Shown here one piece after another: positions 2,621 through 29,353 of a stretch of DNA of 40,636 nt (its first letter is position 1; each line of letters starts with the position of its first letter). The translations under genes and the position numbers were made by a program. Origin of the DNA: Klebsormidium nitens (Eukaryota > Plantae > Klebsormidiophyceae); contig DF237673.1 of NCBI GenBank assembly GCA_000708835.1, forward strand, positions 1-40,636, written 5' to 3'. The notes beneath the pieces are model-generated. The model saw only the letters and a program-made list of their open reading frames with translations. It searched no databases and had not been told where the DNA came from.

Positions 2621-5600
2621 ATGCCTTTAGCTGCTTGCCGGGTATCCACTACATCGGAATTAAAAAGAACTGAGCGTAAGGTGAGGGATCCCTCTCCTGC
2701 TGTATAGTCTCGCCTGACGTGTACCTCTTCCTTTGCAGGGGCAATATCAGCCTGCATCATGCCAGAGATTAGTTTTCAGCGCAGCGCTTGCCACCCTTCT
2801 CATACTGGCCGTAACATGTACTGCGGCATCAGCAGCCCTCGAGTCGAAGGGGGGGCGCACGCACAGACAAATCCTGCAAGTCGCTACTCCCAGTCCCTCA
2901 GCGGCTGCACCACTGAGCACATCTCCTGAGGAAAGTCCCACGCCCCCACCAACCAAGACCCCTTCAGTCACCACCCTCCCTCCCACCCCTGCGACTCCTC
3001 CCCCTACAACAGATGTCCCCGCTACAGACCCTCCCACCCCCCACCAACTAAGACCACCCTCCCTCCCATCCTTGCGACTCCTCCCCCTACAACAAATGTC
3101 CCTGCTTCAGACCCTCCGACGTCCACCCCATCTGTGGCCCCAACAGGGACCCCCTTGAGCACTGCTCCACCTCCGCCACCCCCAGTGTCAGCAACTCTGG
3201 CCCCGCCTATAGGGACACCCCCGGTCACTACTTCCCAAGCCACGCAGCAGGCCACTTTACCACCACCGCCCCCTCCTGTACTGCCTACCTCGCCTCCGCC
3301 AACTTCCTTGCCTCCTACTGAAAGCCCCTCATCATCATTTCCTTCTCCTCTTTCTGGTACTCCCCTTCCCAACATTGTCTTATCCGCAGCAACTTCCCCA
3401 CTTCTATCCCCATCTGAGTCCACCCCAAACACAAGTCCCCCATCCACCCCCCTTCCTTCTGTCGTTCCGGTTTACATTGACCCCCCGTCCCCAAGTCCAG
3501 TGTCTGCCCCAACTGGTAGTAGTGCAGCCCCAACCAGCCCCCCACTTGCTGAGAGTACCATTGCTCCACCAACCAATTCCCCCTCCCCAACTCCAGTCTT
3601 GTCCTACATAGGAACCCCGGACACCCCCGGGCCAGCACCTACTGTTCCACCAACACTTCCCCCCGTTCAATCAGCTCCTCCCACAGGCCTTTCCCCAACC
3701 ACCCCTTACCCACCTCCTTCAGAAGAGATTGCAACTCCAACCCCTTCTCCAACCAGTCCTGCTCCGGACTCGACATTCTCCCCACCATGGGCTGCTCTTT
3801 CCAACGACTTTCCTCCTCCCCCCCTGGGTGTTATTTCCACCACGCCCGCAGCTACTGCAACCGGAGCTGTTCTGCCAGCGCCCCCACCCTTTTCAACCGG
3901 TCCTGCTCCTCTTCTTTCCGAGTCGACACTCTCCCCACCATCCGCTGTCTTTTCTGTCGACTTCCCTCCCCCGCCCTTAGATAATCCTTCCACCGCGCCA
4001 GCCATTGCAGCCCGAACTGTTCTTCCAGCGCCCCCGCCCTCCCCAACCAGCCCTGCCCCTTCTCTTCCTGACACTCCAATCTCCCCACCATCCGATGCTC
4101 TTCCAGTCAACTTTCCTCCACCCCCCCTCGGAACCCTCTCCTCTGGGCCACAAATTGCAACCCAAAGCGTTCTTCTGGCGCCCCCGCCTCCAGCTCGTCC
4201 ACCCGCTTTCCTGGCCACCAACTTAACCTCTGCCGAGCCGCCTCCACCCAGCTTATTCCCTCCGCCAAGCATCGGTATTACGGATGACAACCTGTTTGGC
4301 TGTTCCTGCACTGAGTTCGGTTCTGGTTCGGGTGCCGGCGGGGCAGCTTGCCTGCCTCGGGGAGATGACGCCTTTTCAAGAGAAGCGCCCCTTGTGCTGG
4401 TGAGTTTTCCCGCTCCTTACACTGCACTCCATATGCCGCCTCAGATACAGCTCGACTTGGAATTGAGGGCAAATGCTGCTTATAATATGCAATTCCTGGA
4501 GTAGCTGAGCTGATCAAAATCTTCTCCATCAGATCTAGCTGCTTCATACTAGTGCCTTCAAAGGCCGCGTGTATAAGCTGATTGTCTTGTGAATGGGAGG
4601 GGCACTAAGTAGATCTTGGCGGGCTCGAAAGATGAGAAAAGCTGCAGACTGTTGGATGCACATGCATTTACTACTTCCACTGTAAACAAGCTGCACTTTC
4701 ACATTCAGCGGGTTCTATTTTTGCTAGAAAACACCATCGATTGCCTCTCTCCACACGTCCGTTCAACATCGCACGCTCTACTCTTCCCCGCCCCCATCAT
4801 GATCTAACATGGACATCTCGTTGAGGCTTGCAGCCCATGAAATTCTTCGGCTCGACTGTTTCTTCGCTGTTCGTCAACATCAACGGGGACCTGACGTTGG
4901 ACCAAGAGTACGGCGCATATACTTCACTGCCATTTCCGATACAAGGTGAACCAAAAGCCTTCACTTCACTAGTCTTCGATATTGAAGCACTTATGGCGAG
5001 CATCTTTATCCTCTGATTTCAGGGCTTGGCTGGTTAGCTCCTGTGCTGTGTCGCTTCGCTAGACGGGCCTTTTATCCAACTAACTTAAACTTTTGAATCT
5101 GCTTGCCAGGCGACAGGCTTAGGTGGTAACAGTGCCCTCACTACATTGCCTTGTAATCTAGTGTGCCCAGCTGACAATCTGCCAGACCGAAGCGACCCTT
5201 CGAAGATATAAAGGGGCTTCCTTGGCTGCCAGTTCGGAGCCGGGCCGGGTTAATGAGAACCTGAGCATCAATCTGGAATCCGACCTTCAAATAGGGCCTA
5301 GCGCCGGTTCACATGCTTCTTTTCTGGGGTGACATGGAGCTGGTCCGTTCTAGCCGTGGTTTCGTTTTGGTAAGAAGCTAACGCGCGTCGGTGGTTCAAG
5401 GAGAAAAGAAAGCTTGTGCAAGATATATATTATATAAAATGTCCGTTTTGAGTTGGTGAGAAAGGCAACAGGCTAGGGTGAGTCGATGCAGGGCCCGGCC
5501 CTTGGTCGAACCTTAACCCTCTTTCTTGGCCTACTGATCCGGCGACGCGAGTCAATCTAAACGAAGCGTGGCCGTCTTCAGCACATCTATCGTATTGCAG

Positions 5601-8600
5601 GTCAACCATGTTCCAACGGCCTCTCAGCTTTACCTGGTTCTTGGCTGACTTGTCGAAGCGTCCACTGTGAAGAGGTAGCCAAACACTGACGCCTTGATTT
5701 GCAGTTGGCGGCATCAAGATCTTTGCTGCTTTTTGGGCGGACGTGGACACCAATTCCGATCCGATAGCCGACTCGGATCCGGCCACCAGCTACGTCTGCT
5801 ACCGCAGCACGGCTGACGCCGCTGACGTCAGCAAGTTCCAAGGAGACATTGCAATCGCGTTTCCGTCGGTCACCTTCAATCCCGCCGCGGTTTTCATCGC
5901 CTTTTGGTGAGCAGATGCGAGTCGCGAACTTTCTTCTTTTCAGATCAAGGACGCCTCGCTTTTCAATCTTATCGAGCGGACATCGGGTGTGCGAGAATGA
6001 TCACGTCGGCTGCTTCGTTCTAGGGTTCCAGCATAGTAGCTCCTCAAGTAGAATCTCTGCCAGTTGACGATGCTGACGGAAAAAGCGAACCAGATCAACT
6101 TGACACAGGAGTATATAGTTTCTCTGTGCGGTTATGGCACCAACGGGCACATTCAGAGTGCGGAAAGCAGGGCCACCGTCTGGGTCTTGGTATCATTGCC
6201 GCAGGCGTCTTGTTCGCAGTGCCGACGCCTCGATGAGACCGAAACGTTTCTGCAGCGGAAGCGAACGTACTGAGGAGAACCTGGATGTTTTATGCTGACG
6301 CACGTGAGCGTTCATCCAGGCACAACGTGGGCTACTACCCTGCACAGTACAACAAGCGCAACACGTTTCAGGCGGTGATTGGTTACACCGCCGGCAACAC
6401 GTTCGTGTGTTACTACTACACGGAACTCACCTGGACCACAGGGCAGGCAAGCGGCGGCACCGATGGCCTGGGGGGATACCCCGCGCAGGTCGGCTTTGAT
6501 GCCGGGGATGGGGTCAATTACTTCTCTCAGCCAGGTAGCCAGACGGCTGCCGTCCTCAACTTCGTAAGGGAGAGCAACATGGGCGTGCCTGGTGAGCTGC
6601 TTTTGAACCCAAACTTGGAAGCCTGGCACTACAAAAAGCGAGCCCGTATGGCGTTAAAGAACATCGCGGCTCTCAAAGATGTGCCACCTGCTTACGACAT
6701 GCAGCTTAGCAGGGTTGCACCTGAGGCTAAGTCATATGATGCAGCTCGTCATGAAGCACCGCCACAAAATGAGGGAACATTTCTGTTGCGCTCAAACCAC
6801 CATCCCGCACTTTCTCTTCTTCCTTCCCAATACTTTTTTGTGTCTTCTTTGTCTTTGTCTTCGTTACTCGAGCAAGCCACTACTATACTCATTCTGGATA
6901 TAATCGTCACCTACTCGAGCGGTTTACCCTACCCTTTCAGTCGACGACTCTTTTTTGTGTAATATTCCTACTTTTTCTCGCCTACTTCGTCGACTCGAGC
7001 TTTCATGTTCGACCCTCCTACTTAACTGCTGACGTCACTTTCTTTTACATTTTCACTCGTCGGTTCCTCTCCACGCTACTTCTTCCCCGTTATTATTCTA
7101 CGCGTCACTCTCCTTCTCTTTGACTCCGCGTTCGACGCCATTTCGACTACTTCTCCTTCACTACAATCTCCTGACGTTCCCTCTTTCATTCCCTCCACCC
7201 ATTTCTCCACCCAGACCTTCATACTCCTTCTTTCTTCTTAAAACCGGTTTGAATACCTTCCGCCTGACCGGTCCGCCTTTGGACGCTTGGCAGCACGAAC
7301 AACTCGAACGCAATTGACCTGAATCATCCCTTGGACTCTCAAACGCTTGACCTTTCCGTCCGCGTACACCACTGCCCACATTGGCGACGAAAGTGCATGC
7401 GCGCTCAAAGTTGCTAGTGACACATTTCCGGCCTGACACATTTTTGGCTTCACACTCGTAACCTCCAGTGGTTTCAAAGCCTCTGGAAGGGAAATGTTCC
7501 AAGATTAGCAGCTTGATGGTATTCAACAAGGGCGTTGCCAACACTAGGATTCCGCTGGATACATGTGCCGTTGCCTAGCAACTCGTAGCGTAGCTTATTC
7601 CGCTCCCTCAAGTGGCTAGGGGGGTAAATTGGACACACAATCTATGTACAGCCATGTTTAGCCTCCTAGTCCGGAAAGAGCACGTTTGTGTCTATCAAAT
7701 CTGCACTTTCTCAATCCCTACGATCTTGAGGCCTCAAGTAACTCAAGATTCGATCAGATGGGCTCTGAGGCTGACAGAAAACATGTTGCTTTTCAAAGCA
7801 TCACTTCCTCGGACAGAAACGGACCGTCAGAATCCATTGTATATTAAGTATCCGTTCATCTTTTTGTTGTTCGCCTTTGCGCAGGCAAGTTTTGCTACCA
7901 GGTTGCGGTGGCCATCCAAAACCCGACCGGGGTTTACGCCGGCGGACCGTACTCGGTGCAGAGCGGATCGTCCATCACCCTAACTGGGGAGGCGTCCAAC
8001 GACGGTTCCCTCTGCGGGCCTCTGACGTTTTCCTGGGACACGAATGCCAATCCGCCGGCGTTCAACGTCGACCTGACGGGGCCCTCGCCGACGTTTGTGG
8101 CGAATGTTCCGGCTTCCTTCCGATACGTTGTGCTGCGGGTGACCGACAACTGCGGCGCGACGTCCGTGGACACTTACATCAACGTCACGGGTGAGAGCGG
8201 GCTTGGGTGAACACCATCAGGTCAAACGAAGCCGCCCGTAACAGTCTAAGAAAGCATGTAATCAAATCACCTTGCGTCCTGATGAGTTGCTGTACTCTGG
8301 TCCGAAAGTGTGGGCCCGTTTGGCCACTTCCTAGCTGTCCTCTCGGCTCGAATCCGCCATCCAAATACATTGCTAGAACAGATTCTAATCTTTATTGGCA
8401 ATCTCTGTCAAGGCGAAGAATTCTTCTGTTTCCCCGTGAATGCAAAGCAGGTTTGCCTTTGATCAGTTCAGTGAATCCTAACGTTGAGTCCAGCAAGCAC
8501 CTTTTATCATACCAGTTAATCGGGATGGCACGGCCGCCTTGGACTCGCAAAGAGGCAATTCCACGTATCAAGCGTTCTTCGCGGTGATCCGGAAGTCCGG

Positions 8601-11600
8601 CTTCATCAAAAGATACCGTGAGTTCCAGCAACGTGTCATAGCACTGACAGGTCCTGCATAATCATCAAGCAGAAGACTTTAAACTGTCTTCTGGCCATCG
8701 TCACTTTCCGTTCTTACTCCGTTTATCCAATGATATTGCAGCCGCTCCACTTCCCCCGCCTGCGCCGAGCACCCCTGCGCCCAGCCCTCCGACAGCAGAG
8801 CCCCCGCCACAAGCGACTCTGCCAGGCTTTCCCCCTCCCATGCTGACAGACACGCCAAGGCCTCCCCCATTTGAGCCAGTACCCCCCCCGCCTGTGACGA
8901 CTGCTCCAGTACCCCCCCCGCCTGTGANNNNNNNNNNNNNNNNNNNNNNNNNNNNNNNNNNNNNNNNNNNNNNNNNNNNNNNNNNNNNNNNNNNNNNNNN
9001 NNNNNNNNNNNNNNNNNNNNNNNNNNNNNNNNNNNNNNNNNNNNNNNNNNNNNNNNNNNNNNNNNNNNNNNNNNNNNNNNNNNNNNNNNNNNNNNNNNNN
9101 NNNNNNNNNNNNNNNNNNNNNNNNNNNNNNNNNNNNNNNNNNNNNNNNNNNNNNNNNNNNNNNNNNNNNNNNNNNNNNNNNNNNNNNNNNNNNNNNNNNN
9201 NNNNNNNNNNNNNNNNNNNNNNNNNNNNNNNNNNNNNNNNNNNNNNNNNNNNNNNNNNNNNNNNNNNNNNNNNNNNNNNNNNNNNNNNNNNNNNNNNNNN
9301 NNNNNNNNNNNNNNNNNNNNNNNNNNNNNNNNNNNNNNNNNNNNNNNNNNNNNNNNNNNNNNNNNNNNNNNNNNNNNNNNNNNNNNNNNCCCACTCCCCC
9401 AACTACCACGACGCCAGCACCACCTCCTGCTCAAACAACCAGCGCGCCTCCTCCGCCGCCCCCAACAAGCACGCCGACGCCTTCTCAAAGTACCCCTCCG
9501 CCAAAAACGACCGCCCCATCCCCCCCAGTACCACTAGTGACCGTGCCGACCACACCGTCGCCGCCGCCTTCTAACCCCCCCCACTTCGCCACAAACAACG
9601 ACGCCTGTACCCGCCCCCCCACTTACCACAACACCAACACCATCTCCTCTGCCGGGGCCGCAGACAAGCACGCCAACGCCTTCCCCGACTCAGCCAGTCC
9701 CAACCCCGCCAGAGCCTACTATCCCGTCTCCCCCCTTGCCTCAAGTTACCGGCTCGACCGCGCCCCAACAACCGCCGCCCAGCCTAGTGCCCCCCCTGCC
9801 ACAACCAACTGTCCCAGCTCCTCCGCTGCCGCAGAATGCAACTCCGCAGCCAACAACCCCAGCCACTCCCTCCCAGACCCCACTCCCCCCCCCTTTAAGT
9901 GCCCCGCCAGTGGCCACCCTTCCCTTATCGCCACCCAATATCAACCCGACCCCAACGATCCAATTTCCGACCATTCCTCCATCTCCAAGCCCCCCCGTGG
10001 CCACTCAACCGGGGCTGTTTCCGCCCGCTTCAAACACTCCCTCCCCAGCACCCTCATCCCCGACCGGAAGTCAAGCCCCACCGCCTTTCTCCACTGTTCC
10101 TTTGCCGACAGTCGCGACCCCCCCGGTTCCTCTCCCCGGCCCTTCGTTGTCACCCCCAACAGTAACGCCTACGTCTGGTCCGCCTGCCACCAGCATAACC
10201 CCAATCCCAACGAACACGCCGCTTGCATCTCTCCCTATTCCCAGCCCTAGCGCGTCGCTTGCGGCTCCATCGCCCTCACCTCTAGTTCCCATCGGCAGCC
10301 CTTTCCCGGTGCCGATTAACACCCCCTCGAATACGCCTTCCGGCACTCCTACAGTCATTGCCCCGCCAAACGTCACACTCGCCTCTTCTCTCCCTGTCGG
10401 CTCAAGCCCTCCCACAGCCTCCGATACCCCGGGTCCTTCCTTCCCCCTCTCTAGCCCAGTGCCGACCGGCAGTAACTCGCTGGTTTCGCTGACTGCCTCG
10501 CCGCCTCTTCTGCCCGGGCAGCCGACAACGCCCAGTCCTACCACGGCCGTTCTCCCAGGCTCCACCCTTCCGCTTCCAACCCTTGGTCCATCCCCTGCGG
10601 GAAGCGCCGTCCCCTTTGGAAGTCCCGTAGCAAGTGGCGCGCCGGGAACGGGTTCCATCGATGCCTCAACCGTCGCTCCTAGCCCAGGGTCTACAGCCCA
10701 AGTGCCTGTACTCCCAAGCGACGGGCCAGTCGCAGCCTTTACGACTTCTGTAAGCCCGCCACTGCAAACGGCACCCGTCCTTTTCATCTCCGGCAATACC
10801 GCGTCTCCCTCCGAATCACCCCTTTCCTCCGGCATCCCCGTGGGAACAACAGCTCTCCCGCTTTCCCCAACCTCAAACCCAGTCTTAACCTCAGGCCCGG
10901 TTCCGATCCAAGCCCCGGTCACAACGCAAGCACCGATCACGACGCAAGCCCCGGTCGCGAGCCAAGCCCCGATCACGACACAAGCCCCAGGGACAACCTC
11001 AGGCCCGGTCACGACACGAGCCCCGGGGGCGACATCAGCCCCGGGCTCGACGCAAGCCCCGGTCACGAGTCAAGCCCCGGGGGTGACCTTAGGCCCGGTC
11101 ACGACCTTAGCCCCGATCACGAGCCTAGCCCCGGCAGCCACGTTAAATCCAGGGGTAACCCTATCTCCAACGTCTGCAACCGGCGCTCCGATCACGAGCC
11201 AAACCCCGACATTAAGCCAGGTCCCTGTGGCTACCGTTGACTCAGCCTTGGGAACTGAAGCCCCACTTCCTGCGGGTACGCAAGCGCCGAGTGTAATCCC
11301 CGCACCGGGGACCGCTCAAACCGCCAGCCCAACAACACCCCAGGAGACGATCCCCAGGGTCAGTGCCGTCCCGTCGATTTCACCTCAGCCGGCAAGCACG
11401 TTACCGATCAGCACAAGCCCGGTTCTCTCTGTCGTGGAAGAAACTCCAGTCCCCGAGCCCGTTCTCTCCCCCGTGCCCACCCGGGTTGGCGTCATTACGC
11501 AAGCTCCTCTCCCAACGAGTCCGATTGGCGACCCGACAGTTGTTGTCCCGAGCCAAGTGCCGGCTTCGAGTGTGGTCGCCGGAATCTTTCCGAGCGAGAT

Positions 11601-14600
11601 AAGTGTCCCCGGTTTGCCCGGAAAGTTCGTCGCGACAGCCTCGTCGCAGCTCTTACGCACAGAGACGTCCATGCGGGAGGTGCCCGGTACGGCCAACACT
11701 GTCGCCAGGTTCACTACGGACACGCCGCAGAATGTGGGCGGCATTCTGCAGGTAAGCAGGGCCGGTCCTTCGACGAGGTTCAGAGATGGTACAAAGTTCC
11801 AGTGGTCCTCAGGCAGCTCCGTCCGTTGGTGGTACAGAATTTTAGCTTTGGAAGCACGGGGCGCTTAAATTGAGACGCCGATTCTTTAGCAGGTGGTTGC
11901 AAACCAGGTCGCAGGGTCAAGGGCGTGGTTTGCCGTCGATCGCCTCCTGCAGACAATCGAAAACCCTGATTATCCTATGCGTGTCGTACTGGTTACAAAT
12001 CAGAATCTCCTCCTCTTCGGACAAGGGACCCTTGTTCGTACAGATCACGAAGACCTTTGCGCTGCAGACACGTAAGATCCGGCGAGCCGGAAAAACCTGT
12101 GCCGCCCTGTCACACCCCTGCAAACCGGAAGTGAACTGACCCAGACTTGGCAGTGTTCAAAAGCCACATATAAGCAGCAGAACCTTGTACACCCTCATTC
12201 GGAGCTGACTTTGATCAGCTTCGAGACGGTTCTCGTCAGTCTCGTTCAATTCCTTCCGTTGATTTCACGCCCCTCAAGCTTTGCCGCTTTCGTCCGCTGC
12301 AGCTGCCGAAGCTCGGAGACTTCACCAACCTGGTCTCCCCTCCCATCTCGTTCCAACTGGATCCCGCCACGGCCGCGCTGTGCGGGACCGCGTGCGTTGC
12401 TTCCTGCCGGGTAAGCGCGCACGTGGCCCTTTTCCGTAGTTCAATTCGCAGTGCACACGAGTTTGACTAGGGCACAGATAGACGTATGGCAGTGCCGTTC
12501 TGAGGTGCGGAGTCGCCACAGGAAACGATGTATAAAGGTGCACCATGATACCCTAAGGACTGCGATGAGATTCTTACGTCACAAACCAGCTTCCTCGCAA
12601 CGAGCAAACATAACCTGTTCTGGGCAGAGGTCACCGGGAATGGCGTGAATGGACACCAGCAAAGCTGCTTCTCCGTATCTCTGATCTGTTAATGTCAAGA
12701 GAGAAATACCCCAAGAACTCGCAAGGAATAAAGACGACCGCTCATATGTTGATGAATCCGAGGAGTTTTTCATCGTACCTGGTCGTTGCGCATCTAGCCA
12801 GTTCTGAGCATCTTCGTCGATAAAAGCATCCACTTGAGGACTGACCGACCTTGACCGGCAAAAGTCTTGCAATGCGAATGTTTGCCGCGCACATTCAGAG
12901 CACATTGCAAGATACTTCAGGCTTCTCCCATCTCGACCTTGTGGCGATTTCCTGGTAGCGGCCTTTAATCGATCCTCAAGACCCTTTATAGTCACACGAG
13001 TGTTCCGTGTCTAACCAAACCCGGTAAACAGGTCTGACCTACATTCAAACCAATCCATCTGGGTACAATGGCTTCCAAACACCGCCGAAGCAGGCTTGCT
13101 TAAGTGTGGTGTCCCCTTTTGGATTCGCAGGTCGACGACTTGGCCCCTGTTCCCTGCGGGTCCAGCCAGGCCGCCGTAACTCCGGCTAGCCTGGAGGACG
13201 GTTACCACCGCGTCACGGCTTCTTTCTCCCCTTCGCCCGGGGCACTGGCCCCGGTCGGTGTGCTCAGCATATTCTTCACCGTGGGTAAGATCTTCAACGT
13301 GATGTTCCAAGCTCAATACGCCTGCGGCGTTTAAGAATCATGAATTCACGAAGCAAATTGCTTCCAATCGATCATCGAGCAACTTGACAAGCTCGTGCCT
13401 TCAAGCGCCTCGTGTCATGAATGAGCGTCTCAACACGTTACTGCAAGTCTGCTTAAGACCTTTTAGCTATTCCAGACCCCCGGCGTGCCTCGTATGCTTG
13501 CGCCATACTCTTGTCGGCAGCAAGTCGCCACTGGTCAGGTTGCAAGCGTACGGCAGTCCCGAATCATCTATCTCTGAGCTCCTTGCAGACACGGTACCTC
13601 CGACCGTCTCTGTTGCCTTGGAGGCTGACAACAACGAGTCACCCCAAGTCTTCATTGACGTCATCGACGGCAGGCAGACCGTCTTCATGACCTGGAACAC
13701 CCCGGCGGCTTGCCCCGGGTACGCCGTCGCAAGCGAACCGGTCGACAACCTGAACGGAAATTCGTTCAACCTGGAAGGCGCGCAGTTGATCAACTTCCAA
13801 GTGGACACGTCACGTAGCGCGGGACGGAGGCTGAGAGCCCTTCTGCAGGCGAATCCCTCCTTAGCGAACTCTTCTAATCCGGTCGCCTACAGATTTCAAG
13901 TGAGAGAGCTTGAACCTTTTCTACTCTTGAATTTGGCCCCAGTCGTTGATAATACATGGAAAGGTATTCGGCCCTGGATTTGCACAGTCCTAGGATTAGG
14001 CACCATCATGAGTGGTGTCTTCGAAGGTCTTTGTTCTGCCACATGTTCCAAAAACCGCATCAGAAACAGCTCTCCTGTCTGCGGCCGCGACCTGATTGGA
14101 AGCTCCTTTCCAACTGACTGCGCTCGAACTTCGAACCAAAGACGACGTAGATCCTTGACCTCCTCTAGTCTTTTGTCCCTTGTCTCTGAGCTGGCTTGCC
14201 GCTCTCACAATTTTCTTATGCACATGTCGAATTGTAGTATCAGATTTTCAGCCCCGAGAATCATGAATCGTAAAACCAAGTCTGCCCAGCATAGAACATC
14301 GAAGGTGCATCTTTCTTCTCAATGAAGTGAACAGATCGGTCGAGCGATCACTCTCAGCCGATTTGCGCCCCGGTTTCTCCAGGTGGTGCCAACCGGGTCC
14401 GGTCCCGGGCTGGTGAGAGTCTCAGTGTCCCCGGCAAATCTCGCAGACCGGGCAGGAAACCCCATCCAGCTCACCGGAAGCTCGTCGTACGTCATGTACT
14501 ACGGTGAGTGCGCCATCACACGTTTCGAAGAGGCAATGATATCCTTTTCAATTGGATCCAACCTCCCGACCAGGGATGCTTTTTGCATATCTTTGCGCAT

Positions 14601-17600
14601 GAATGAGTGCACGTTTCGATCCTTGTGAGTGAATCATTCTGTTGATGCTGCGCAGATCGGGATCCCCCGACGGCCCTCCTGCAGCTGGTGTCCACGAGCC
14701 CCAACGGCGCGACGTCACTATCCAGCGACCCGGGGGTGTCTTCCGATCCGACTGTCACGATCGTACTCGACTTCGACAAGAGGGTCATTGGCTTTGATGC
14801 CAACTCGGTGGTGCTCCAGAATGGCACGCTTATCAGGTAGGGCTGCTATTTGGCAGCTCCTCAGTGAGTTGTTCGAGATCATCTGAGATCATTTAAGGAC
14901 CACCACCCTCTAGTTCGTGGTTCTGCCAGTGGGCCTCGTCCGATTTGAAATAGTGGTCAGACACTTTTTGAGGGTTGATTCGTAGCGCCGTCAGTACTTC
15001 CGCGGCGCTCGCGGTTGCCGGGAGATGAGACAAACGTGGCGTTGAAAGCAAGCACATTGTCTGGGGTAGCCTTGTGAGACAGGACTTGGGAGATACACGC
15101 AATATCTGAGGCTCCTTTCTCCTCCATCCGCTCTGCAAAGAGCTGGCAGCATTAAGCAATAAGGACCTGATACTCTGGTCAATTCCTACGCCGCATGACG
15201 TGTTGTTGAAATCTGAGTGACGTTGGGGTTGTCCGGCAGGGCCGGTCCGAACGCTGCCAGCGCGGAGGGCTTTTCGTACGTCCTGACGGTCGCCATCGAC
15301 CCGGGGGCCACCCTGGTACTCTTCGTCCCCGCAGACAGCGCCTACAGCGTCGTCGGACTGGGCAACACCGCCTCCAATCAACTGCAAGTACTCAACTGTG
15401 AGTGCCCAAACACATCGCACCGCGTATAACTATTTCCAGGAAAGAGTCTCATATGATGTCGCATGAAGCAGCATGTCGGCAACACCTTAGCACGAACGAT
15501 CCGAGAAAGAAAAAGAGGTTCATATCACGGAGTTTGGAATCGGGTGGGCAGCTCGGCCAAGAAATCCTAGTTTTCGCTTTGCAGACGCGGGCAGAAATTC
15601 ATCATTGTACCCATTGGGATCCGCTTTAGGAAAAAGCTAACTGGATTTTAAGCGTTCACATCAACCTCAATAAGTGATCTAGGCCGGATTTATTGATTGA
15701 AACAGAGTAGATAACGAAGACGCTTGAAATCCTCTCTTACGAGACATTCAAGTTGTGGGTAAATACGCTTACACGGACACTGCTTCTCTCCCTTTCAGAC
15801 GCCATCAACACGCAGCTTCAGTCGAGTGTGCGAGCTACTGCCGTCGCTTCCTTGGGAGCCGTGGCGGTTGGGAGCGTCTTAGCAGGTTCAGGAACCCTGT
15901 TTATGGTGAGTGGCATCATCAGCCCAGCGATCTTCGCCTACGAGATCCGCTGCACTTCGTGAGCAGGGCCGTATACATCGAAACCTTGGTACTCTTTCTT
16001 CCATCCAGGTTTGCGGTGTCTCGGTCAAAGACCCCTTGAGGTGACAATTTTTGGTTATCTGAACACATCTTAGGGCGCTTGCCCCCCCATTCAATAAAGC
16101 TAGCATCTGTAGTGTAAGGTGGACCTGTCTTGTGTTAGCAATCTTGTTTTTCCAGAGTACACAACGCTAAGCAATAGAAAAGCAATAGAAGTGCTCCACC
16201 CTCCTGGCTTCATTGTGCAATTCACGCGCTCCCTGCGCCTTTTCCAGACGGTTGCCTCCAGCTTCAGCCTCTTCGCGGCGCGTCTCAACCTGGATGTTCC
16301 GCTTCCGACCCCTTACCGGGACGCGAGTTCCGCCCTCGGCTTTGCTCTCTTCCGCTGGCCGTCTCCGTTCGACACGCTCTCGGGCAGCAGCCCGATCCCG
16401 TACACGGAACGCCCACAGCCGCTGGGCTCCGACGCTCCGGTCGGTCCGGCCAACGGAACAGCGGCTGTCAGCGACCGCGGCGGCGGAAGGAGGCGAGCGC
16501 TGCTGCAGGCGGCCGCAAGCAACGGAACTCTGCCCAACGGAACGATCCCGCGGAACACAACCCTGGTGAACCAGGGACGTCCGATCGTCTTCGGAGACAG
16601 GAGCGTGTCCTTTGAAGCCACCACCAACTCTTACAGCAAGGAGCTGAGTGTAAACGCGCTGAGCTTGTTCCACAGCAGCGGACATGACGGGTGAGTAAGA
16701 AGTGCCACCTGTAATCGATTATGACTTGCACCTTCGGCAGCTGTACAAAGGCTGTGGCAAACGGCGGTCGCCTTTGAAAGATTGAGATGCGAACCTGCGA
16801 ACTTTCATCGAGATGTGGCGAGGACTCTTGTAATCCGCTCTCCTCGAGCTCAGAGCAATTTGGCTCCCGGAAAAAGTCCGAATGTGACGGCGAAATCCAT
16901 CATCGACCGTCTCTGGAGATTTTTCAAGCGCTGAAGACCGTTGCTAAGTATGCGGATAGACAATCCGTGACTTGTAACACTTGCAGCGCACTTGCACCTA
17001 CTCTACCTCCTAAATAGTGACGCATAATCCGAATAAGAGGCCAGTTCAACCTGTTGTCAACGTGTTCCTGCCTCCTTGTCTCAACATCAATCTAGGCCCT
17101 ACACCTTCCCGCAGTTTGACAGTGAGCTCTGTCAAGCGCCCGACCTGCATTTCGCAAAATACTGAAACGCGATCATGATCCTACTTGAAGAAGGCCATCG
17201 AAGCGAGAAAACGCGCCGGCTGTGATTCACCGAACCTCGGGTTCTGCGCCGGCTATCACGGTTCGGACCGGCCGTGATCCTCTTCTCGTACTTCTGCCCC
17301 TTTTCCAGGCTGCGAAGCTTGCTGCGCACCGTGTTCTACGTGACGGTCATCCTCCTCGTGGTCTTCCTGCTCCGTTACCCCCTCAGGGCGGCCTCGCTCC
17401 GGCTCGCCAAGATGCAAGCCCCCCCCTCCTTCTTGGTATTCCCGGCCATGGAGCTGGCCTTCTTCTCAGTTGCGCTGGTGGCGCTCTCGTACGTTGCCCT
17501 GGGCGCAATCGTCGGTGAGTGGGACCACGTGCCCGTCTGTGGCGCAACGACAAACCTTTTAGATATACCAGATTCTGCGCGACTTTTGAAGCAGTGTTGG

Positions 17601-20600
17601 GTCTTACGGCGTGAACTTCTGATTTTTAGATTCCTCCAAGTAAAGTCTACCGACACCGCACCAGCTCGTGCTTGTCGTCAGGATCTCACGACTCGGATTG
17701 GCTTCTCTTCCTCATCACTGTAGTCGTTCCTGCAGAAGCTCTCACAGATCGCTTTCGATACGATGAGTGTTGCATTATCAGCAGGTACCCTGCTTTAAAC
17801 AAACCTGTGGGCAGATCCTTTGAAAGTCTCTCGGCCTGCTAAAGTCAAGCATCGCTGGTTGAAAAGAAACGACTGTAAGCTGCCGCTCCGCAGCTCTTCA
17901 TTCCGCACATTTGTTGCTCAGCCCGTCGACTCTCAATGATGATCTGGACGTAAAGATACTCGTCTATCATCTTTGATGGCTTCGGAAGTCCAGCCCGGCG
18001 GTCTGATCTTCCGGTAATTTCAGCTTGTTCAGACGTCCCGCTTGCCCGCATCTCTGTACCTTACCAACTCGAGTTGTGCAGGACGCTCTTCTTGGGGCAT
18101 CGTTCTGGGGCTGCTCGTGATCCTCGCTGTGATCTCCTTCTTCATCCTGGTGCTGTCCGTAGTAGGGCGCCACGTACTCATGGTGAGCAAGATCAAACGA
18201 ATCTCGCAAGATGCTTATTGTAGAGTGCTGAATCTGCTACAAGATAAAACTTTTTGATTGGGTTGCCTCTCGACATGCATGAACATGGACTAGTACAACT
18301 CTCGCTTTGGGTATTGGCCGTGTCAAGATCACCGGAGGCACTGCGTCCCTACGAGCGTGGTTCTTTGCTAGCTGCTGTCAACTAGCATAACCAGAGCTCA
18401 CGCGCAGAAACGTTCTCTGTGTAGCCCGGAAACTGCATGAATCGGATGCCCCATTTTATGTTCTTCAGCTTCTTCACAATTTCTTGAAAGAAACAGGAAT
18501 GCCTTCCGATCTCCTGATATCAGACATGGTGTTGAACACCTGAACAAGCAGCATCTTCAGTGCTTAGCTGGACTCCTGACCGTTCCCAAATGCTTGACTA
18601 GCCGTCTTTGTTTCCTCCAGAGCAAGTCGGTCGCTTTCGTCTCCGAGCAACACCGTCCCGGGGCTTCTCTCGCCGCCTGGTTCCGGGCCCCCGTGAACGG
18701 CTCCTGGGAACCGGTGGATACCGCCGAGGGCGACGAATTCCGGGCCAAGTACGGCTACTTGTACCAAGACTACGCGGGTCGCCCCTCCGAGCTGGTCATG
18801 ATCGGCCCGCAGCGCCTGACCAGGTCGGCGACCAAGAAGGGCGCCCCTGCGGCGCTCTCCTCCCGGGCTGTCTCAGGGGCTCGTGCTTTTTCGTTGTCGA
18901 AGAGCTTCCACCTAAGCGAGGAGGAATTAGAGCAAGCCAAGGAAGACGACCCCCCGGAAAGAGTGGACCCTCTTGAGGGCGGCCTCACGAGTACCCCGGT
19001 GAAAGCTCCCGAGGAGGCTCTGATTGACATTCAAGAGGAACCAGAGGAGCCCACACAGGATCCCACATCCCCGGAGAAGGAGACCAGTGACGTCATTGTG
19101 ACGTCGCCCAACCGGGAGCCCCTGATGGAGACGGCGCCCGGCAAAAGGGCGCCGGGCGCAAAGCTGTCCCGATCGCAAACCATGCGCACGGTGCACCGGG
19201 TGGGCAAGGTTGGCCCCGGGGCGCACCTCCGACCGGGGTGGAAGCTGATGACGCTCTTTGTCGTGGTGAGCGCGCAAACCGGGGCGAGGGCCAATTGGCC
19301 GTCCGTTTTTAGGTCGCGTTCCGAAGGGGTTTTCGTTCAACGGGGTTTTGAAACTTCCGCGCAATGACGTCGTCGATCTGAAGTCAGAGACGGGTGGGTT
19401 TTGGTAGGATGACGTTAGCATGGTTGCTGCACAGAGACTTGGCCGGTCAGAAATGGCGGCGGGTCAGCCTCCCAATCTATTAGCTGCACACGGGGTCCGT
19501 TAGTTGCGAGTGTGCTGAGCAAAGGCCGCTTTAAATCTGCCGGGATGCGGCTGCCCATCCATCAGCTGAATGCCAAAGTCTTTGACTTTAAAACTGCTGA
19601 TTGACAAATCGTAGTCTTTCAAAGTTCCGTTCGAAGGTCCGCAACGAGCCTTCGAGTTGCTCGTTCACCCATCAACGCGCGGCCTTGCAGTGTTTGCTCC
19701 AGCTCATTCCGCTCATACTCGTCCCGCCCGTCTTGCAGGCCGTCGAGGCCGCTCTGCTGGGTGCGACCCACGGTGTGCGTGCCCAGTACTGGCAGGTCTG
19801 CCTCATCGTCATCATGCGAGGAGTGCTCGTCATCGTTTTGATCATTCTCAAGGTAAGTTCACGAATCTTTCCAAGTTGACCGGAGCCCATGCCTTTTCCA
19901 CCCGAAAGTTACAACTTGAATCAAGACTGACCATGTACGTTGAGGCGGCGCTGCTGGAAGACTTGTGTGAAGATGGGACTACTTGGGTGTTCGTGTAAGT
20001 AGAACGAGAATTTCTTAATCAAGCATCCCGTTAGGCTTTGTTTGAGTCACACAACCGAGGCGTCAGCCATGGTCATTAAGGTGAACGGCTGGCTCGCTTT
20101 ACTTCTCGCCGTGGAGAACACAACAGAAAAATGCTGGCATTCACGCTCTGTGAGAAAGCATCCTCAGATTCTGCAATGTTTGCACTGGACTGCTTCCACC
20201 GCCCCTATTGGCTCTCTTCACATCTTACCCCACCATAATGTTTCCGCGCCCTGGCCTCGCCAAATCTTGACAGCCCTCCAAGTATCTTAGGGTGGCCGTG
20301 GTTGCGGAGAAGAATCAATAGATGTAGTCCACGGACATTGTTTTTCTCCGAGCTCTGACATCTCCCTTCTCCTTGCAGCCGTTCACGAGAGCGACCCTCC
20401 AGGTGATCGAGTTGCTGACGTTGGTGTGCGAGTTGTCTGTCGTCACGCTGGCGTTAGCTCTCGTGGTGCAGCAGGACGTCAGCCCCGCGGGGCAGCTGCG
20501 CAAGAACCAAGAGGGGCTCGGCTACACCATGATTGCCCTGCAGCTCCTGGCCGTCTTCGGAAACGTCGTCAACGCGTGAGAACCCCGCCCTGTGCTTTTA

Positions 20601-20951
20601 GTGTGACACTTTTAGAAAGTTTGATCTTTGCTCCACACAAGCGCCTCGGCTACGGGCCGCTATGTACAATCAAAGTCACGACACTTCGTTTTTTGCATTC
20701 TGCTACACACCAGATGAGTCGCGATCACGAAAAGCAAGTGGGGGCAGTTTCCGGCGCTGGCCAGGGTTTGCAGCGCGTCTGTGCACCCAGACAAAAATAC
20801 TGTTCCTGCTTAAACAAGAAAGGGGTCCCCCAATTCGGAGCGCTCCGTCCTCACAAAGTTCTTTTTCTCTGCATGTAGCCTCGCCTCAGCGTGTCTGAAA
20901 CTCTCCGACTATCTGCGGGGCAAGAAGAAGGCGCTTCCAGTCCATCTTTAG
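2621..20951 (+). CDS. Giant multi-exon cell-surface membrane protein: Pro/Thr-rich stalk + NIDO + PKD + Pro/Thr stalk + Ig-like repeats + 8-9 TM At3g48200/Pkd2-FLC-like module (~2,900 aa)
   Basis: Hand-built GT-AG exons: 2621-2680, 2739-4399, 4834-4945, 5705-5906, 6320-6591, 7885-8190, 8742-11751, 11893-12071, 12303-12410, 13131-13284, 13589-13899, 14383-14503, 14656-14836, 15240-15397, 15799-15905, 16248-16690, 17309-17514, 18082-18182, 18621-19265, 19739-19852, 20379-20575, 20879-20951. Splice phases agree at every junction except 12071/12303 (unresolved). The model needs single-base corrections in two poly-C runs (3037-3042, 9575-9582) and spans an N gap. The first and last exons are the least certain; an alternative stop is TGA at 20577-20579. 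Confidence 0.8.
3745..4195 (+). repeat. Three ~150-153 bp coding repeats (SPP..L..DFPPPPL...VLPAPPP)
   Basis: CTCCCCACCAT recurs at 3778, 3931 and 4081, and the peptide motif FPPPPL recurs three times with a ~50 aa period. Confidence 0.8.
4349..7910 (+). other. NIDO (nidogen-like) domain split over 5 exons
   Basis: The spliced translation CLPRGDD...PMKFFGSTVSSLFVNINGDLTL...IFAAFWADVDT...VCYRST...FNPAAVFIAFWHNVGYY...NTFQAVI...WTTGQASGGTDGLGGYPAQVGFDAGDG...PGSQT...SNMGVPGKFCYQV reproduces the hallmark NIDO motifs (FFG, VNxNG, FWADVD, NTFQ, WTTG-ASGG, GFxAGDG, SNxGxPG). Confidence 0.92.
7930..8190 (+). other. PKD-type Ig-like domain
   Basis: The exon translation YAGGPYSVQSGSSITLTGEASNDG...FSWDTN...YVVLRVTDNCGATSVDTYINVT matches the AGGPY...L.G..S.D...WD...V.LxVTD..G pattern of PKD domains. 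Confidence 0.8.
8928..9389. other. Assembly gap (462 N) inside a Pro/Thr-rich exon
   Basis: Run of N. The left edge ends in the second copy of a 30-bp unit (CCAGTACCCCCCCCGCCTGTGACGACTGCT = PVPPPPVTTA), which suggests a collapsed tandem repeat. Confidence 0.97.
10891..11160 (+). repeat. 18-bp coding tandem repeat, ~15 copies (QAPVTT/QAPITT/SGPVTT-like hexapeptide)
   Basis: Units such as CAAGCCCCGGTCACAACG, CAAGCACCGATCACGACG and CAAGCCCCGGTCGCGAGC follow each other at an exact 18-nt period. Confidence 0.9.
12303..15397 (+). other. About three Ig-like (bacterial Big-type) repeats
   Basis: Motifs CRVDD...C...LEDGYHRV, DTVPPTV, LADRAGN, DRDPPTA...LDFDKRVIGFDANSVVLQNG and GNTASNQL, all typical of Big-type beta-sandwich repeats and of the ectodomain of the At3g48200 family. 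Confidence 0.7.
15799..20951 (+). other. Multi-pass membrane module (8-9 hydrophobic helices), At3g48200 / fungal Pkd2-FLC (TRP-like) type
   Basis: Motifs FAARLNLDVPLPTPYRDASSALGF, FPAMELAFF, GSW...FRAKYGYLYQDYAG, LRPGWKLM and LKPFTRATLQVIE, plus long hydrophobic runs in exons 15799-15905, 17309-17514, 18082-18182, 19739-19852 and 20379-20575. Confidence 0.75.
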
Positions 20952-22979: not shown

Positions 22980-25900
22980 TTATGAGGGCGCGGAGGGCGG
23001 GTTGGGCGGCGCGACCCCGGTGTAGAGCGTGGTGGGGCGCGGCGGGAGCGGCGGCACCGGGAGGTGCCCCTCCAGCATGGCCAGGCACTCGCGCATGCAC
23101 GGCCGCACGCTCACGGCAGTGTGGATGCACAGCAGGGCCACCTGGCACACACGCACGCGGGCGGCCGGTCAGGGCGCTTAAAAAAGCAGCAGCGATGCAG
23201 ATCCGTGTGGAGGGGTGCCAACAGACAGAGCAGGCTAGGAGGGGGAGACAGACAACTAGTTCTTGAAGAGACAGTGCTGAAAGGATCAAGGAAAGATGGA
23301 ACCGAGGGGCAGCCTTCACGTGAGTAATCTGCACGGAGAGGGGCTCAGTGGGCTTTGATGCTCGTTTGCGGAGCGGCTGCAGGCGTTACGCCAACTGAAG
23401 GCACCGGAAAGCGTCGGCAGCGCGCGCGCGCTCACCCTGGTGGCCTGCTCGATGCTGTGCGCGTGCTGCTCCCGGCCGCTGCCGAGGCGCGCGTCCACCA
23501 GGTCCGCCAGCTGGCCGCGCTCCGCCAGGATCCAGGCCCACTCCGGCAGAAACGCCTGCGCCACTCCGCAAAGGCATCCACCGTTGTTCACTTGAAAAGA
23601 GCCGCAGGACGGGCTCGTTTGAGCAGAGACAAGAGATGGTCAGTGTCATTCGTCTGTGAATACCCGGCAAGTAGCACTTCCACTACTTGGCGGCCTTTCA
23701 TCTCAGCGTCATCGCAACCCAAAAAGCATGTTATTAGATTCCGGTGCCCCACGGATTATGCCCTCGTATGCTCGCATTGAGACCCGCAGTTAGCTGCGCT
23801 TCAGGGTCACAGCTATGCAGAGTTGCCGACGGGCATGATCCAAAGAATTGCTCCAGTCAACCCGTGCAGGCAACGAAGGAGCGCTTCCAGCCTCCAGAGA
23901 CACTTGAATGGGACAAGCTGCGAGGCTCGTCCAGGAAGTGTGTGTTTGAAGTTGAGGATTTTACAGTTGTGGTGCTTTACCTGGTCGCCGTCAGGCGGGT
24001 CTGCGGTGAGCTTCCTGCCGGCGACCAGGGTGAGCAGCAGCACGCCAAAACTGTAGACGTCCACCTTGTCCGTGACCTGCCCTCCCAGAAAGTACTCGGG
24101 CGCCAAGTAGCCCCACGTGCCCACCACGTCTGCAGCCGGACGGAGAGACAACGTTACAACGGTAACGGGCTCGAGGATGAGGGGGGGCCACCAGTGGCAT
24201 AGAAGAGAGCTGCATCTTTGGCAAGCGAACACCAGTCTCGCTTGCCACAGGACAGAAAGTTGTCTAGCTCAATCTGCGAAGAATCTTCGTAGTACATCTT
24301 GAAAACTGGACAGTGTCGCATTGTCTGCCGTTGACAAGCTCGTGGTACCGCTGAAGTCTCCCAAAAAAGACGCGAAGATACACAAATATAAAAAGGTGAT
24401 TGAGCATAAGTGTGCATGCCAGTCCGCAGAGGCCTTTGGGGCGGCGCTTGCCTGTGGTAACCGCCGACTCTTCGAGGTCCAGAACCTTGGCTAAGCCGAA
24501 GTCCGCTAACTTAGGCTCCAGCGTGCTGGACAACAGAACGTTGCTCGGCTTGACGTCGCGGTGAAGTAACCGCGGCTTACACGACTGCCAGCAGGAAGTA
24601 AGGTAGAAAGTCAGGTGCATATCACCAGTAAGGAAGCGTCGCCTGGACCCTCGGTGCCGAGAGACCACATTAAACGTCTGCTTTTTAACGAGGTTTGAGG
24701 AAGGACAATAAGTCATAACATTTCCAGTGATTATGCATCACAGTGAGCAGCGGAGATCAATTGCTTCCGACCTGCATCTGGACGAACAGTAAGATGAATG
24801 GGAAAACAAACAAACACCAGATTTCATATGAATCCAGCAAAAATGCAAGTGAGGACAACCTTGAAATGCCATCCCTCCTCCGAGAGAACCTCACTTCTAG
24901 CTTCTGGCGGTGCAGCCTCCCTGTCAACATCCACTCCCTGAGTGCAATCCCTGACTGACCTCGTGCAAGTAGGCCAGTCCCCGCGCCGCGCCCTGCGCTA
25001 TGCTGAGCCGCGTCGGCCAGTCCAGCACGGGCAGGGCCGGCGGCGCAGCCCCATCGGTGAGAAGGCGGTCCCCCAAGTTGCCGCCCGCCAGGTACTCGAA
25101 CACGAGCACGCAGTCGTCCCCGGTCAAACAGAAGCCCTTGAGCGCCACCAGATTGCGGTGCCGGCACCGCGCTAGCGCCAACACCTCCCGGGTCGCAGCC
25201 TGCGCGAACAAACGGCCTAAACGTTCAACGGGCGGAGACCATTGCGGCTTCTACTGGTTAGCAGGTGGAGCAGACAACGCACGCTTGTCAAGTTCGTCAC
25301 AGAGGTGGTTTCAAGATGGGATGCCGATTCGCCTCAACGCAGCCCGCCAGCTGAATTGCCTCTTCCCGCAACGCCGCTCGCTACCAATCCAGTGACCAGA
25401 ATCCACTGGTCTTTGTTTTGCTGAGTCCCTCACCGCTGGCCCTGACAACACGACAATACCTGGTATAAAACAAGTCAACATGATTGAACATGTCGTTGTA
25501 GCTAGGAGGATGCAACTGACATTAAGGTCGCACCCGGCACATGTCCCGCACGCTCCCCTTTTGGGCATCCTTCATGGCGGGTTACATCTGCACACGTCAA
25601 GTCCTCGGAAGAAGGAAGCTTCTATCCGTTCCCCCCCCTGCGTTGCTGACCTTGGTCCTCCTGGCGAGGTTCTTGTGCGTGGCCACCTTGACGGCCACCG
25701 CCTCCCCCGAGCGCAGCGTCCCGCGGTACACGCGCCCCCAGCCGCCCTCCCCCAGCAGCCGCCGCTCGTCCCAGTTGTCCGTTGCGCGCCGCAGCGCCGC
25801 CAGGCTGAACCGCTGCAGCTGCACGTGGGGCAGCACGTGGTGCCGCCGCCAGCGCGGCCGGCACCCCCCATACACAACCAAACCCGCGAGCGCTATCAGG

Positions 25901-28900: not shown

Positions 28901-29353
28901 AGGGGCCCGCTGCCGAGGAGGCCGACCCATCTGGGGCAGCAAGGGGCGTCCGATCAGTCACACCACCGTGTGTGGTGGTCGCGTGCGGCTTTGATGATGA
29001 TGTACACCATTCTTGGTACAGAGCGAAGCATGTCTGTAAGGAGGTATTATGCACTTCAACTATGTCAACATGCTTGCTTCAGCTGAACGGCAATATACAA
29101 CGGACTCTGTTCAGTTCACCGAGGGCTCCAAAAAACTTCTGGGAAAGTCTGCCTTACCTGCGGAGCACACCGCAAGTGCGCGTTGCGTATCAGCAGGTAG
29201 GAAGGTCAGAGGACACTCTCCATTAGGAATTGGAGGGGGCAACGGCCGGTCTGGTCGAGGGGCTGTTTCCACGTAATCTGCCCCACTCGGCACCACCGCC
29301 GCCGCCAAAAGGGCCAAAGCCCAAAAGAAAAGCATAGGGGCCGACAAGGACAT
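22980..29353 (-). CDS. Receptor-like kinase (RLK/Pelle) with signal peptide, two SPARK-like Cys-rich ectodomains, a TM helix and an RD kinase domain
   Basis: Exons on the minus strand: 29353-29158, 28930-28788, 28385-28232, 28067-27915, 27634-27411, 27115-27071, 26676-26500, 26184-25651, 25199-24960, 24584-24452, 24129-23981, 23555-23436, 23141-22980. All phases agree. Signal [25 protein letters not shown]; [26 protein letters not shown]; kinase motifs [51 protein letters not shown]. Confidence 0.93.

Follow-up and report, generated by a model that had tools for sequence, protein, structure and literature searches.

Does the scaffold DF237673.1 of the streptophyte alga Klebsormidium nitens (assembly GCA_000708835.1) encode, between positions 2621 and 20951, several small proteins, as the public annotation has it, or a single giant membrane protein? 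The window analyzed here is the entire scaffold, with 40,636 nucleotides (nt), and three public models lie across the stretch in question, i.e., a 302-amino-acid (aa) model with a NIDO domain at 4837-8210, the 999-aa KFL_007240025, and a 283-aa model on the minus strand at 3315-4272. The evidence points strongly to one gene on the plus strand, at approximately 2621-20951, with 22 exons encoding about 2,700 residues in addition to those of an assembly gap. In the domain order that we propose, a signal peptide would be followed by a stalk rich in proline, threonine, and serine (Pro/Thr/Ser), a NIDO domain, a PKD-like domain, a second stalk, three immunoglobulin-like (Ig-like) domains, and a membrane module of seven to nine helices, between which a long acidic loop would lie on the cytoplasmic side. 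Taken as a whole, i.e., the one-gene architecture together with the roles suggested for its parts, the favored reading is held with a confidence somewhat better than even.

The central part of this gene was read from RNA. Sixteen RNA runs, from four studies, are labelled with the source organism and contain this stretch, and the contigs of runs X1 and X2 (study P1), X5 (P2), and X9 (P3) were aligned to the section 6420-12419. The junctions 6591/7885, 8190/8742, and 11751/12303 are exact, with GT..AG ends, in the spliced contigs of X1, X2, and X5, which come from two studies, the raw joints 6590>7884 and 8189>8741 (each with a cut of +1) and 11745>12297 (cut +6) being equivalent to these positions. 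As the introns are skipped, the contigs of these three runs represent RNA. These are the very junctions that an initial annotation, made from the letters of the sequence, had named, and all three proved correct to the base. Of these, 6591/7885 and 8190/8742 share a contig, and 11751/12303 is found in a second one, on the other side of an unbridged gap.

The upstream contig (2430 nt in X1 and X2, 2329 nt in X5) comprises the third NIDO exon, the PKD exon, and the first part of the second stalk (stalk 2a), and stops at 8905 or 8835. Its far end, judging from the exon lengths, would fall at approximately 3026-3057, in an 83-nt tandem repeat of stalk 1, and with this part included its content would be stalk 1, NIDO, PKD, and stalk 2a. 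The downstream contig (3406, 3435, and 6033 nt) runs through the remainder of the second stalk (stalk 2b), is spliced to 12303, and continues onward, in X5 for 3277 nt, which is enough for the remaining coding sequence and a 3' untranslated region (UTR) of some 470 nt. Closer to the start of the gene, the junctions 4399/4834, 4945/5705, and 5906/6320, which were derived from the sequence, are canonical (GT..AG) and in phase. No run has any RNA depth over 8220-8619, within the intron that follows the PKD exon, and for this reason the ending of the public NIDO model, which reads through to a stop at 8208-8210, is unsupported. Low-depth RNA contigs also occur at 6755-7680 (a depth of approximately 5, compared with 60-80 in the exons), inside the 1293-nt intron between the NIDO and PKD exons, and these are probably unspliced precursor or, less probably, a small separate transcript.

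The exon chain had initially been described as phase-consistent, and this is real where its junctions are concerned, as they were confirmed, but the assembly itself is frameshifted at 3036-3041 and at approximately 9575. Downstream of the gap, the reading frame of the assembly is frame 3 as far as a run of eight C at 9575-9582, and frame 1 from there on. The RNA of all the runs that cover the site (3/3) has CC inserted after 9574, and with these two letters the segment 9390-11751 becomes 788 codons without a stop; the shift at ~9575 is an assembly homopolymer error. The other shift, from frame 3 to frame 2, falls on a run of six C (3036-3041, plus strand, read from the sequence) within the 83-nt tandem repeat, and it takes the shifted frame for the second copy to give the same reading as the first (PPPTKT...). 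As the shift at 9574 was proven by RNA to be an error, this second shift is, by analogy, probably an assembly error as well, with the run one C short. Splitting or truncation of the same kind may affect other genes of GCA_000708835.1 in which coding repeats contain runs of C or G.

At the amino-terminal end, a predicted exon 1 (2621-2680, plus strand), with an ATG and 20 codons, was read from the sequence and is uncertain, being joined to 2739 over a GT..AG intron of only 58 nt, far shorter than the others. An upstream exon is nevertheless needed, because no ATG is in frame from the stop at 2715 up to the start of the hydrophobic segment. Exon 2 (2739-4399, plus strand) holds, in one open frame, the signal-peptide-like segment LVFSAALATLLILAVTCTAASA, stalk 1, with approximately 500 aa, and the start of the NIDO domain, CLPRGDDAFSREAPLVL, and it is in a 524-codon open segment (2930-4501) that this NIDO start and stalk 1 are found together. 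Both RNA and sequence place stalk 2a at 8742-8927, where it ends, at the edge of the gap, in 30-nt tandem repeats (10 aa, VTTAPVPPPP), and stalk 2b at 9390-11751, where its 788 codons, open once the CC is restored, end in a conserved segment that precedes the Ig-like region (VPGLPGKF...GGILQ), both on the plus strand. The second stalk has at least 810 residues plus those of the gap, and is taken as 850 residues or more in the proposed architecture.

The composition of the stalks is 28-30% Pro, 14-16% Thr, and 13-14% Ser, with SP, AP, TP, and VP dipeptides present 4-33 times each and few NxS/T sequons. An extensin-type stalk, with repeated Ser-Pro3-5, was considered and rejected, given an SPPPP count of zero, while SPPP occurs once per stalk. 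The initial label of a hydroxyproline-rich glycoprotein stalk calls for qualification, as the extensin SPPPP motif is absent and SP, AP, TP, and VP are merely scattered; in composition, the stalks resemble the mucin or arabinogalactan-protein type more than extensins.

The head that lies between the stalks is best defined by its NIDO domain, which had been recognized from the outset and is matched by PF06119 above the gathering score. The match is consecutive over three plus-strand exons in profile order, 4834-4945 (profile 2-29) and 5705-5906 (30-86), both with canonical in-phase splice sites, and 6320-6591 (87-178 of 186), the donor of which, at 6591, was confirmed by RNA. The Pfam scans were made on stop-free segments, i.e., 4825-5013, 5698-5907, and 6237-6959 for NIDO and 7848-8207 for PKD, with the third NIDO piece reaching 79.2 bits against a cut-off of 25 (E 5.2e-22) and the second an E of 8.6e-5. 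The neighboring exon (7885-8190, plus strand), both splice sites of which were confirmed by RNA, encodes a putative PKD-clan beta-sandwich (K319L-like/PKD_4). Here the proposed PKD domain has a nearly full-length match to two models of the clan, PF18911 PKD_4 (3-77 of 85) and PF22352 K319L-like_PKD (2-79 of 84), but the scores, 17.3 and 17.0 bits, respectively (E 0.005 each), are below the cut-off of 27.

Searches of the PDB by sequence, whether with the profile of the family or with the exons for PKD and NIDO, returned nothing useful, an Atlas search with the NIDO exon merely returned NIDO, and no papers were found on NIDO together with Klebsormidium or algae. NIDO is known mainly from animal matrix proteins and mucins, such as nidogen, alpha-tectorin, MUC4, and SNED1. 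As in these animal proteins, NIDO would stand here beside O-glycosylated Pro/Thr/Ser regions in a membrane-tethered or matrix protein, whereas their AMOP, vWD, EGF, and ZP domains were not found in the Klebsormidium protein, the membrane part of which is polytopic rather than a single helix, in a host that is a streptophyte alga.

On the other side of the gap, the 999-aa protein encoded at 11671-20951 is, by exact look-up, GAQ91076.1 (KFL_007240025), and it maps back exactly, in 15 GT-AG exons ending at 20951. Its public start is an internal Met at 11671, within a 775-codon open segment (9541-11865), and since the paralogs conserve the residues that precede this Met (SVPGLPG.F...LLRT), behind stalks of their own, this start lies too far downstream. 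Stalk 2b and the conserved segment VPGLPG...GGILQ lie in one exon, and the segment is kept behind the respective stalks of KFL_007310020, KFL_000930340, and KFL_003150070.

Six plus-strand exons of the public model (12303-12410, 13131-13284, 13589-13899, 14383-14503, 14656-14836, and 15240-15397) follow, and the predicted fold of their product supports three tandem Ig-like domains of the Big_12 type. The Pfam matches to PF19078 Big_12 are sub-threshold (12-17 bits), but an AlphaFold model of residues 1-372 of KFL_007240025, made with the paralogs and the metagenome exons, has a mean pLDDT (predicted local distance difference test) of 64, with approximately 90 in domain 1 and 70 in domain 2, while the third domain is poorly modelled. 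With this model, Foldseek found invasin, FdeC, and filamin, which are tandem Ig-like rods or adhesins (E 4e-6 to 1e-5), and nine of the 10 Atlas clusters listed carry PF19078 Big_12. The Ig-like repeats of the initial annotation are upheld by the modelled fold.

The membrane module occupies the last eight exons of the public model (plus strand; 15799-15905, 16248-16690, 17309-17514, 18082-18182, 18621-19265, 19739-19852, 20379-20575, and 20879-20951), and consists, in order, of a weakly hydrophobic segment, a loop with NxT sequons, three transmembrane (TM) helices, an acidic loop of approximately 200 aa, four further TM helices, and a short basic tail. By hydropathy, KFL_007240025 has seven strong helices (558-576, 605-623, 630-648, 867-885, 891-909, 922-940, and 960-984) and a weaker hydrophobic stretch of 35 residues at 382-415. 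The loop at 420-555 contains several NGT sequons and the sequence PLPTPY.DASSAL.F.LFRWPSPFD, which is invariant among the paralogs, and the acidic loop, at 650-865, is variable. In an environmental relative at 30-40% identity, the polar helix residues E875, R/K899, and E/D928 (KFL_007240025 numbering) are kept, as is the cytoplasmic motif W..G.W.PV...F.A[KR]YG.

This environmental sequence is one part of a wider family. At least four paralogs are present in K. nitens, including KFL_007240025, KFL_000930340, KFL_007310020, and KFL_003150070, and the last three share 54-62% identity with the protein studied here over the segment before the Ig-like region, the three Ig-like domains, and the entire membrane module. 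The exon lengths of this core are the same in the paralogs, with a Pro/Thr/Ser stalk upstream; in KFL_003150070, for example, four core exons are identical in length (108, 154, 121, and 181 nt), and most of the later ones are identical or differ by a few nt. What stands in front of the core is another matter, as in KFL_000930340 there is only a short stalk, behind a signal peptide of its own, and no other head, and KFL_003150070 (DF237264.1, within the segment L004, 10001-25486) is annotated as a 1980-aa protein with a signal peptide, a GT71 head, a 500-aa stalk, Ig-like domains, and TM helices. The head-stalk junction of KFL_003150070 is a predicted intron, and, if this is real, a mannosyltransferase-like enzyme head would be tethered to the same module. 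KFL_007310020 is truncated by the end of its contig, and is named in UniProt as a "TRP C-terminal domain-containing protein".

Outside K. nitens, two metagenome contigs of approximately 23 kb (L005 and L006; JGI 3300060284 and 3300060285), which are 82-86% identical to one another, carry a collinear relative with 30-44% protein identity and a stalk that extends upstream to the end of the contig, called there as many small prokaryote-style open reading frames (ORFs). The family of stalk, Ig-like, and TM proteins thus occurs in another eukaryote as well. A HMMER search with the Ig exon against 1.8 billion representatives recovered only KFL_007240025, one paralog, one metagenome fragment, and one bacterial match at chance level, while word-indexed searches with residues 400-999 and 860-999 of KFL_007240025, and with the alignment A1, returned paralogs only and no land-plant match. 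Given that the paralogs carry other heads, i.e., GT71 or none, the ectodomain appears, from these sequences, to be modular, with a conserved core and a variable head.

The kinship of the membrane module was approached through domain profiles, features, and shape. The initial annotation had called it Pkd2/FLC-like, and PF06011 (TRP) is in fact the best Pfam match of the last four helices in three of the four paralogs (KFL_007240025, KFL_007310020, and KFL_003150070), always over positions 295-397 of the 426 in the profile. The matches are nevertheless sub-threshold, and the TRP_N/ML-like domains PF14558 or PF02221 are absent from every Pfam scan, with the Big_12 Ig-like domains occupying their position. 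By Atlas features, the module scores 0.93 with DGF-1_C, 0.92 with a streptophyte cluster, 0.90 with an oomycete PF06011 cluster, and 0.81 with an ascomycete TRP cluster, and by shape (the Atlas's own model of residues 540-999 of KFL_007240025) it has a TM-score of 0.61 over 323 residues with a streptophyte Big_12 cluster, compared with 0.49/0.42 over 268 residues with the DGF-1 cluster. By these features and shapes, the module looks nearer to the streptophyte Big_12+TM cluster and the trypanosome DGF-1_C than to PF06011, and true homology with PF06011 is, in our estimation, only slightly better than an even chance.

Each of these three systems is similar in one respect and different in another. 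All FLC homologues carry PF06011, and most have an N-terminal ML-like TRP_N domain, PF14558 (PMC9600462), while the S. pombe protein Pkd2 lets Ca2+ through when the membrane is stretched, with no solved structure reported in the 2022 paper (PMC9727806). The fungal FLC/Pkd2 proteins share with the Klebsormidium module an outside N-terminus, an extracellular beta-sandwich in front of a multi-helix module, and a cytoplasmic tail, but the latter has an inserted acidic loop of approximately 150-200 residues, and its ectodomain has more than 1,700 residues, in contrast to approximately 150. DGF-1 (PF11040) is described in a 2026 preprint as beginning with a signal peptide, after which come seven ribs of beta-helix, an Ig-like "hat", and 7-9 helices (bioRxiv 10.64898/2026.07.27.741050), and likewise consists of a giant extracellular region and then an Ig-like beta-sandwich directly before the helices, although its ectodomain of seven ribs is free of stalks, NIDO, and PKD. 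No Pfam match to PF11040 was found on the Klebsormidium proteins, and any homology with DGF-1_C would be tentative at TM-scores below 0.5.

The streptophyte Big_12+TM proteins (an Atlas cluster of 191 members, PF19078) also have Ig-like domains and then a multi-helix module, but, at approximately 910 aa, they are too short for the heads and stalks of the Klebsormidium protein. This cluster is possibly the At3g48200 family, and the resemblance to a land-plant Ig+TM family that had been suggested at the outset is plausible on the strength of the cluster match. At3g48200 itself is described only as a transmembrane protein with a stress phenotype (PMC9664069), and turned up in the literature only within gene lists.

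An analogy with polycystin-1 or the adhesion G protein-coupled receptors (GPCRs) had been drawn as well, and this found no support. Polycystin-1 is characterized by a REJ region, the GPS/GAIN autoproteolysis site, PLAT, and 11 TM helices, and adhesion GPCRs by GAIN and 7tm_2. There is no REJ, GPS/GAIN, PLAT, or 7tm_2 match in any Pfam scan, which covered all the exons and the four paralog proteins with E values up to 0.1-1, and membership of either group was rejected.

A number of observations weigh against the favored reading. At the level of the gene, the RNA alignment span of 6420-12419 leaves exon 1 and the shift at 3036-3041 outside RNA support, none of the aligned RNA contigs bridges the gap (8928-9389), inside which a stop and a new start are possible, and the depths of the upstream and downstream contigs differ by 1.3-2 fold. 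Nor do near relatives show a NIDO or PKD domain by tblastn, either in the 10 kb upstream of two paralogs or in the 1.4-4.6 kb that remain to the contig end in KFL_007310020 and the two metagenome relatives. At the level of the membrane module, the PF06011 scores are only 13.2-15.8 bits against a cut-off of 28.5 (E 0.006-0.04), over a quarter of the profile, TM helices 2-4 have no Pfam match, and the AlphaFold model of the module with the four paralogs (pLDDT 38) is unusable. Finally, the mechano- or osmosensory role is a guess from the architecture.

Given this, two genes might meet in the gap, one for a secreted mucin-like NIDO-PKD protein and the other for a stalk-Ig-TM protein with its own signal peptide, which would agree with the separate public models, with the missing bridge and unequal depths, and with KFL_000930340, in which the core stands alone behind a signal peptide of its own. 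The gap is of 462 N, an estimated length which, as 3 x 154, would leave frame 2 and frame 3 unjoined if taken literally. Both of its edges, however, are in-frame Pro-rich repeats with periods that are multiples of three. At the upstream edge, in the 30-nt (10-codon) tandem repeat, short contigs loop back at a 60-nt period, and the RNA contigs end at 8835-8927, with loose ends that carry on the repeat unit, i.e., in an open frame within a tandem repeat, where assemblers break. From the other side, the X5 downstream contig (record 12, 6033 nt) starts 282 nt, or 94 codons, inside the gap, before 9390, with a copy of 9415-9569 that has diverged but is in frame (222-nt period, 15 inserted letters) and 70 further letters, 30 of which read in frame as TPPAPLATS, if they are adjacent to the aligned part. 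With these 94 stalk codons already read, approximately 165 nt of the estimated length are still unseen, and it is in this space that a stop, a 3' UTR, a promoter, a 5' UTR, an ATG, and a signal peptide would have to fit. The public models, for their part, start at internal Met codons within a domain or a long open frame. Two genes are accordingly judged decidedly unlikely, and a single-gene architecture, which is supported by the spliced RNA that flanks the gap, by the open frame that stalk 2b shares with the Ig/TM part, and by the paralogs, is considered highly probable.

It might also be supposed that the gene is decaying, i.e., that both frameshifts are real and that the long frame is never translated as a single protein, as the assembly would imply if taken as written. 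The CC that restores the frame after 9574 in the RNA of three runs speaks against this, as do the abundance and splicing of the transcripts and the position of both shifts in C-homopolymers of repeats, the copies of which keep their amino-acid reading across the shift, so that decay is hardly credible. A further question is what the one protein does. In the mechanism that we favor, the stalks would be rods with heavy O-glycosylation, on which the NIDO-PKD head is held out within the cell wall or past it, and the Ig-like domains would couple them to the membrane module, a putative distant relative of the fungal TRP/FLC-Pkd2 and DGF-1 C-terminal modules. The protein may in this way connect the membrane with the condition of the wall or matrix, whether it serves as a tether or, as a sensor, alters ion flux.

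The same gene may, on the other hand, encode a passive wall-to-membrane tether or adhesin, in which the module is an anchor or has a non-mechanical role in transport. Adhesion and matrix proteins typically bear NIDO, PKD, and Ig-like domains on stalks that are glycosylated, the nearest folds of the Ig-like region are bacterial adhesins and filamin rods, and DGF-1, the nearest protein by Atlas features, is not known to act as a channel (bioRxiv 10.64898/2026.07.27.741050). An anchor would nevertheless have little need for as many as seven to nine helices, in which buried acidic and basic residues are conserved, or for a conserved cytoplasmic motif, and the links to PF06011, weak but consistent, lead to a family with members that affect Ca2+ (PMC9727806; PMC9600462). 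The purely passive role is a possibility of the lesser sort, and a sensor or channel function, which is argued from the architecture, is likewise tentative. It is improbable, if conceivable, that the Ig-like beta-sandwich and the seven to nine helices are one ancient eukaryotic module, common to FLC/Pkd2, DGF-1, and the streptophyte Big_12-TM proteins, which bears interchangeable giant ectodomains and which, in Klebsormidium, would carry a NIDO-PKD head on glycosylated springs through the wall and gate Ca2+ flux by wall strain.

Some features of the surrounding annotation should also be recorded. The 283-aa public model at 3315-4272 (minus strand) is antisense to stalk 1, within an exon that is transcribed from the plus strand, has no Pfam match, and is a Gly-rich reading of the complement of Pro codons; it is probably spurious. 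Minus-strand ORFs are likewise called over the stalks of paralogs and metagenome relatives (L002 161-1384, L003 3679-6490, and L005 724-3970). The downstream neighbor, at 22980-29944 (minus strand), is a model of 827 aa that combines SPARK with a protein kinase domain, as in the receptor-like kinase type, and from 30359 onward (plus strand) there is a 548-aa model with LBP_BPI_CETP N- and C-terminal lipid-binding domains.

For the biology of Klebsormidium, the first consequence of this analysis is that a transcribed protein of approximately 2,700 residues is at present listed under three hypothetical proteins with no relation to one another, of which the antisense one is probably not real. The single gene, as reconstructed, would place NIDO on a membrane protein that is polytopic, in an alga closely related to the land plants, and suggests that an unstudied family of streptophyte membrane proteins is modular, with one stalk-Ig-TM core that carries NIDO-PKD, GT71, or nothing. 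If the module is kin to Pkd2/FLC and DGF-1, these proteins would be candidates for the sensing of the wall by walled cells of the plant lineage, and would offer a first functional handle on their land-plant relatives and on DGF-1 itself. Should the gating of Ca2+ by wall strain be true, the protein would sense wall integrity mechanically, in a manner that has not been described for the plant lineage.

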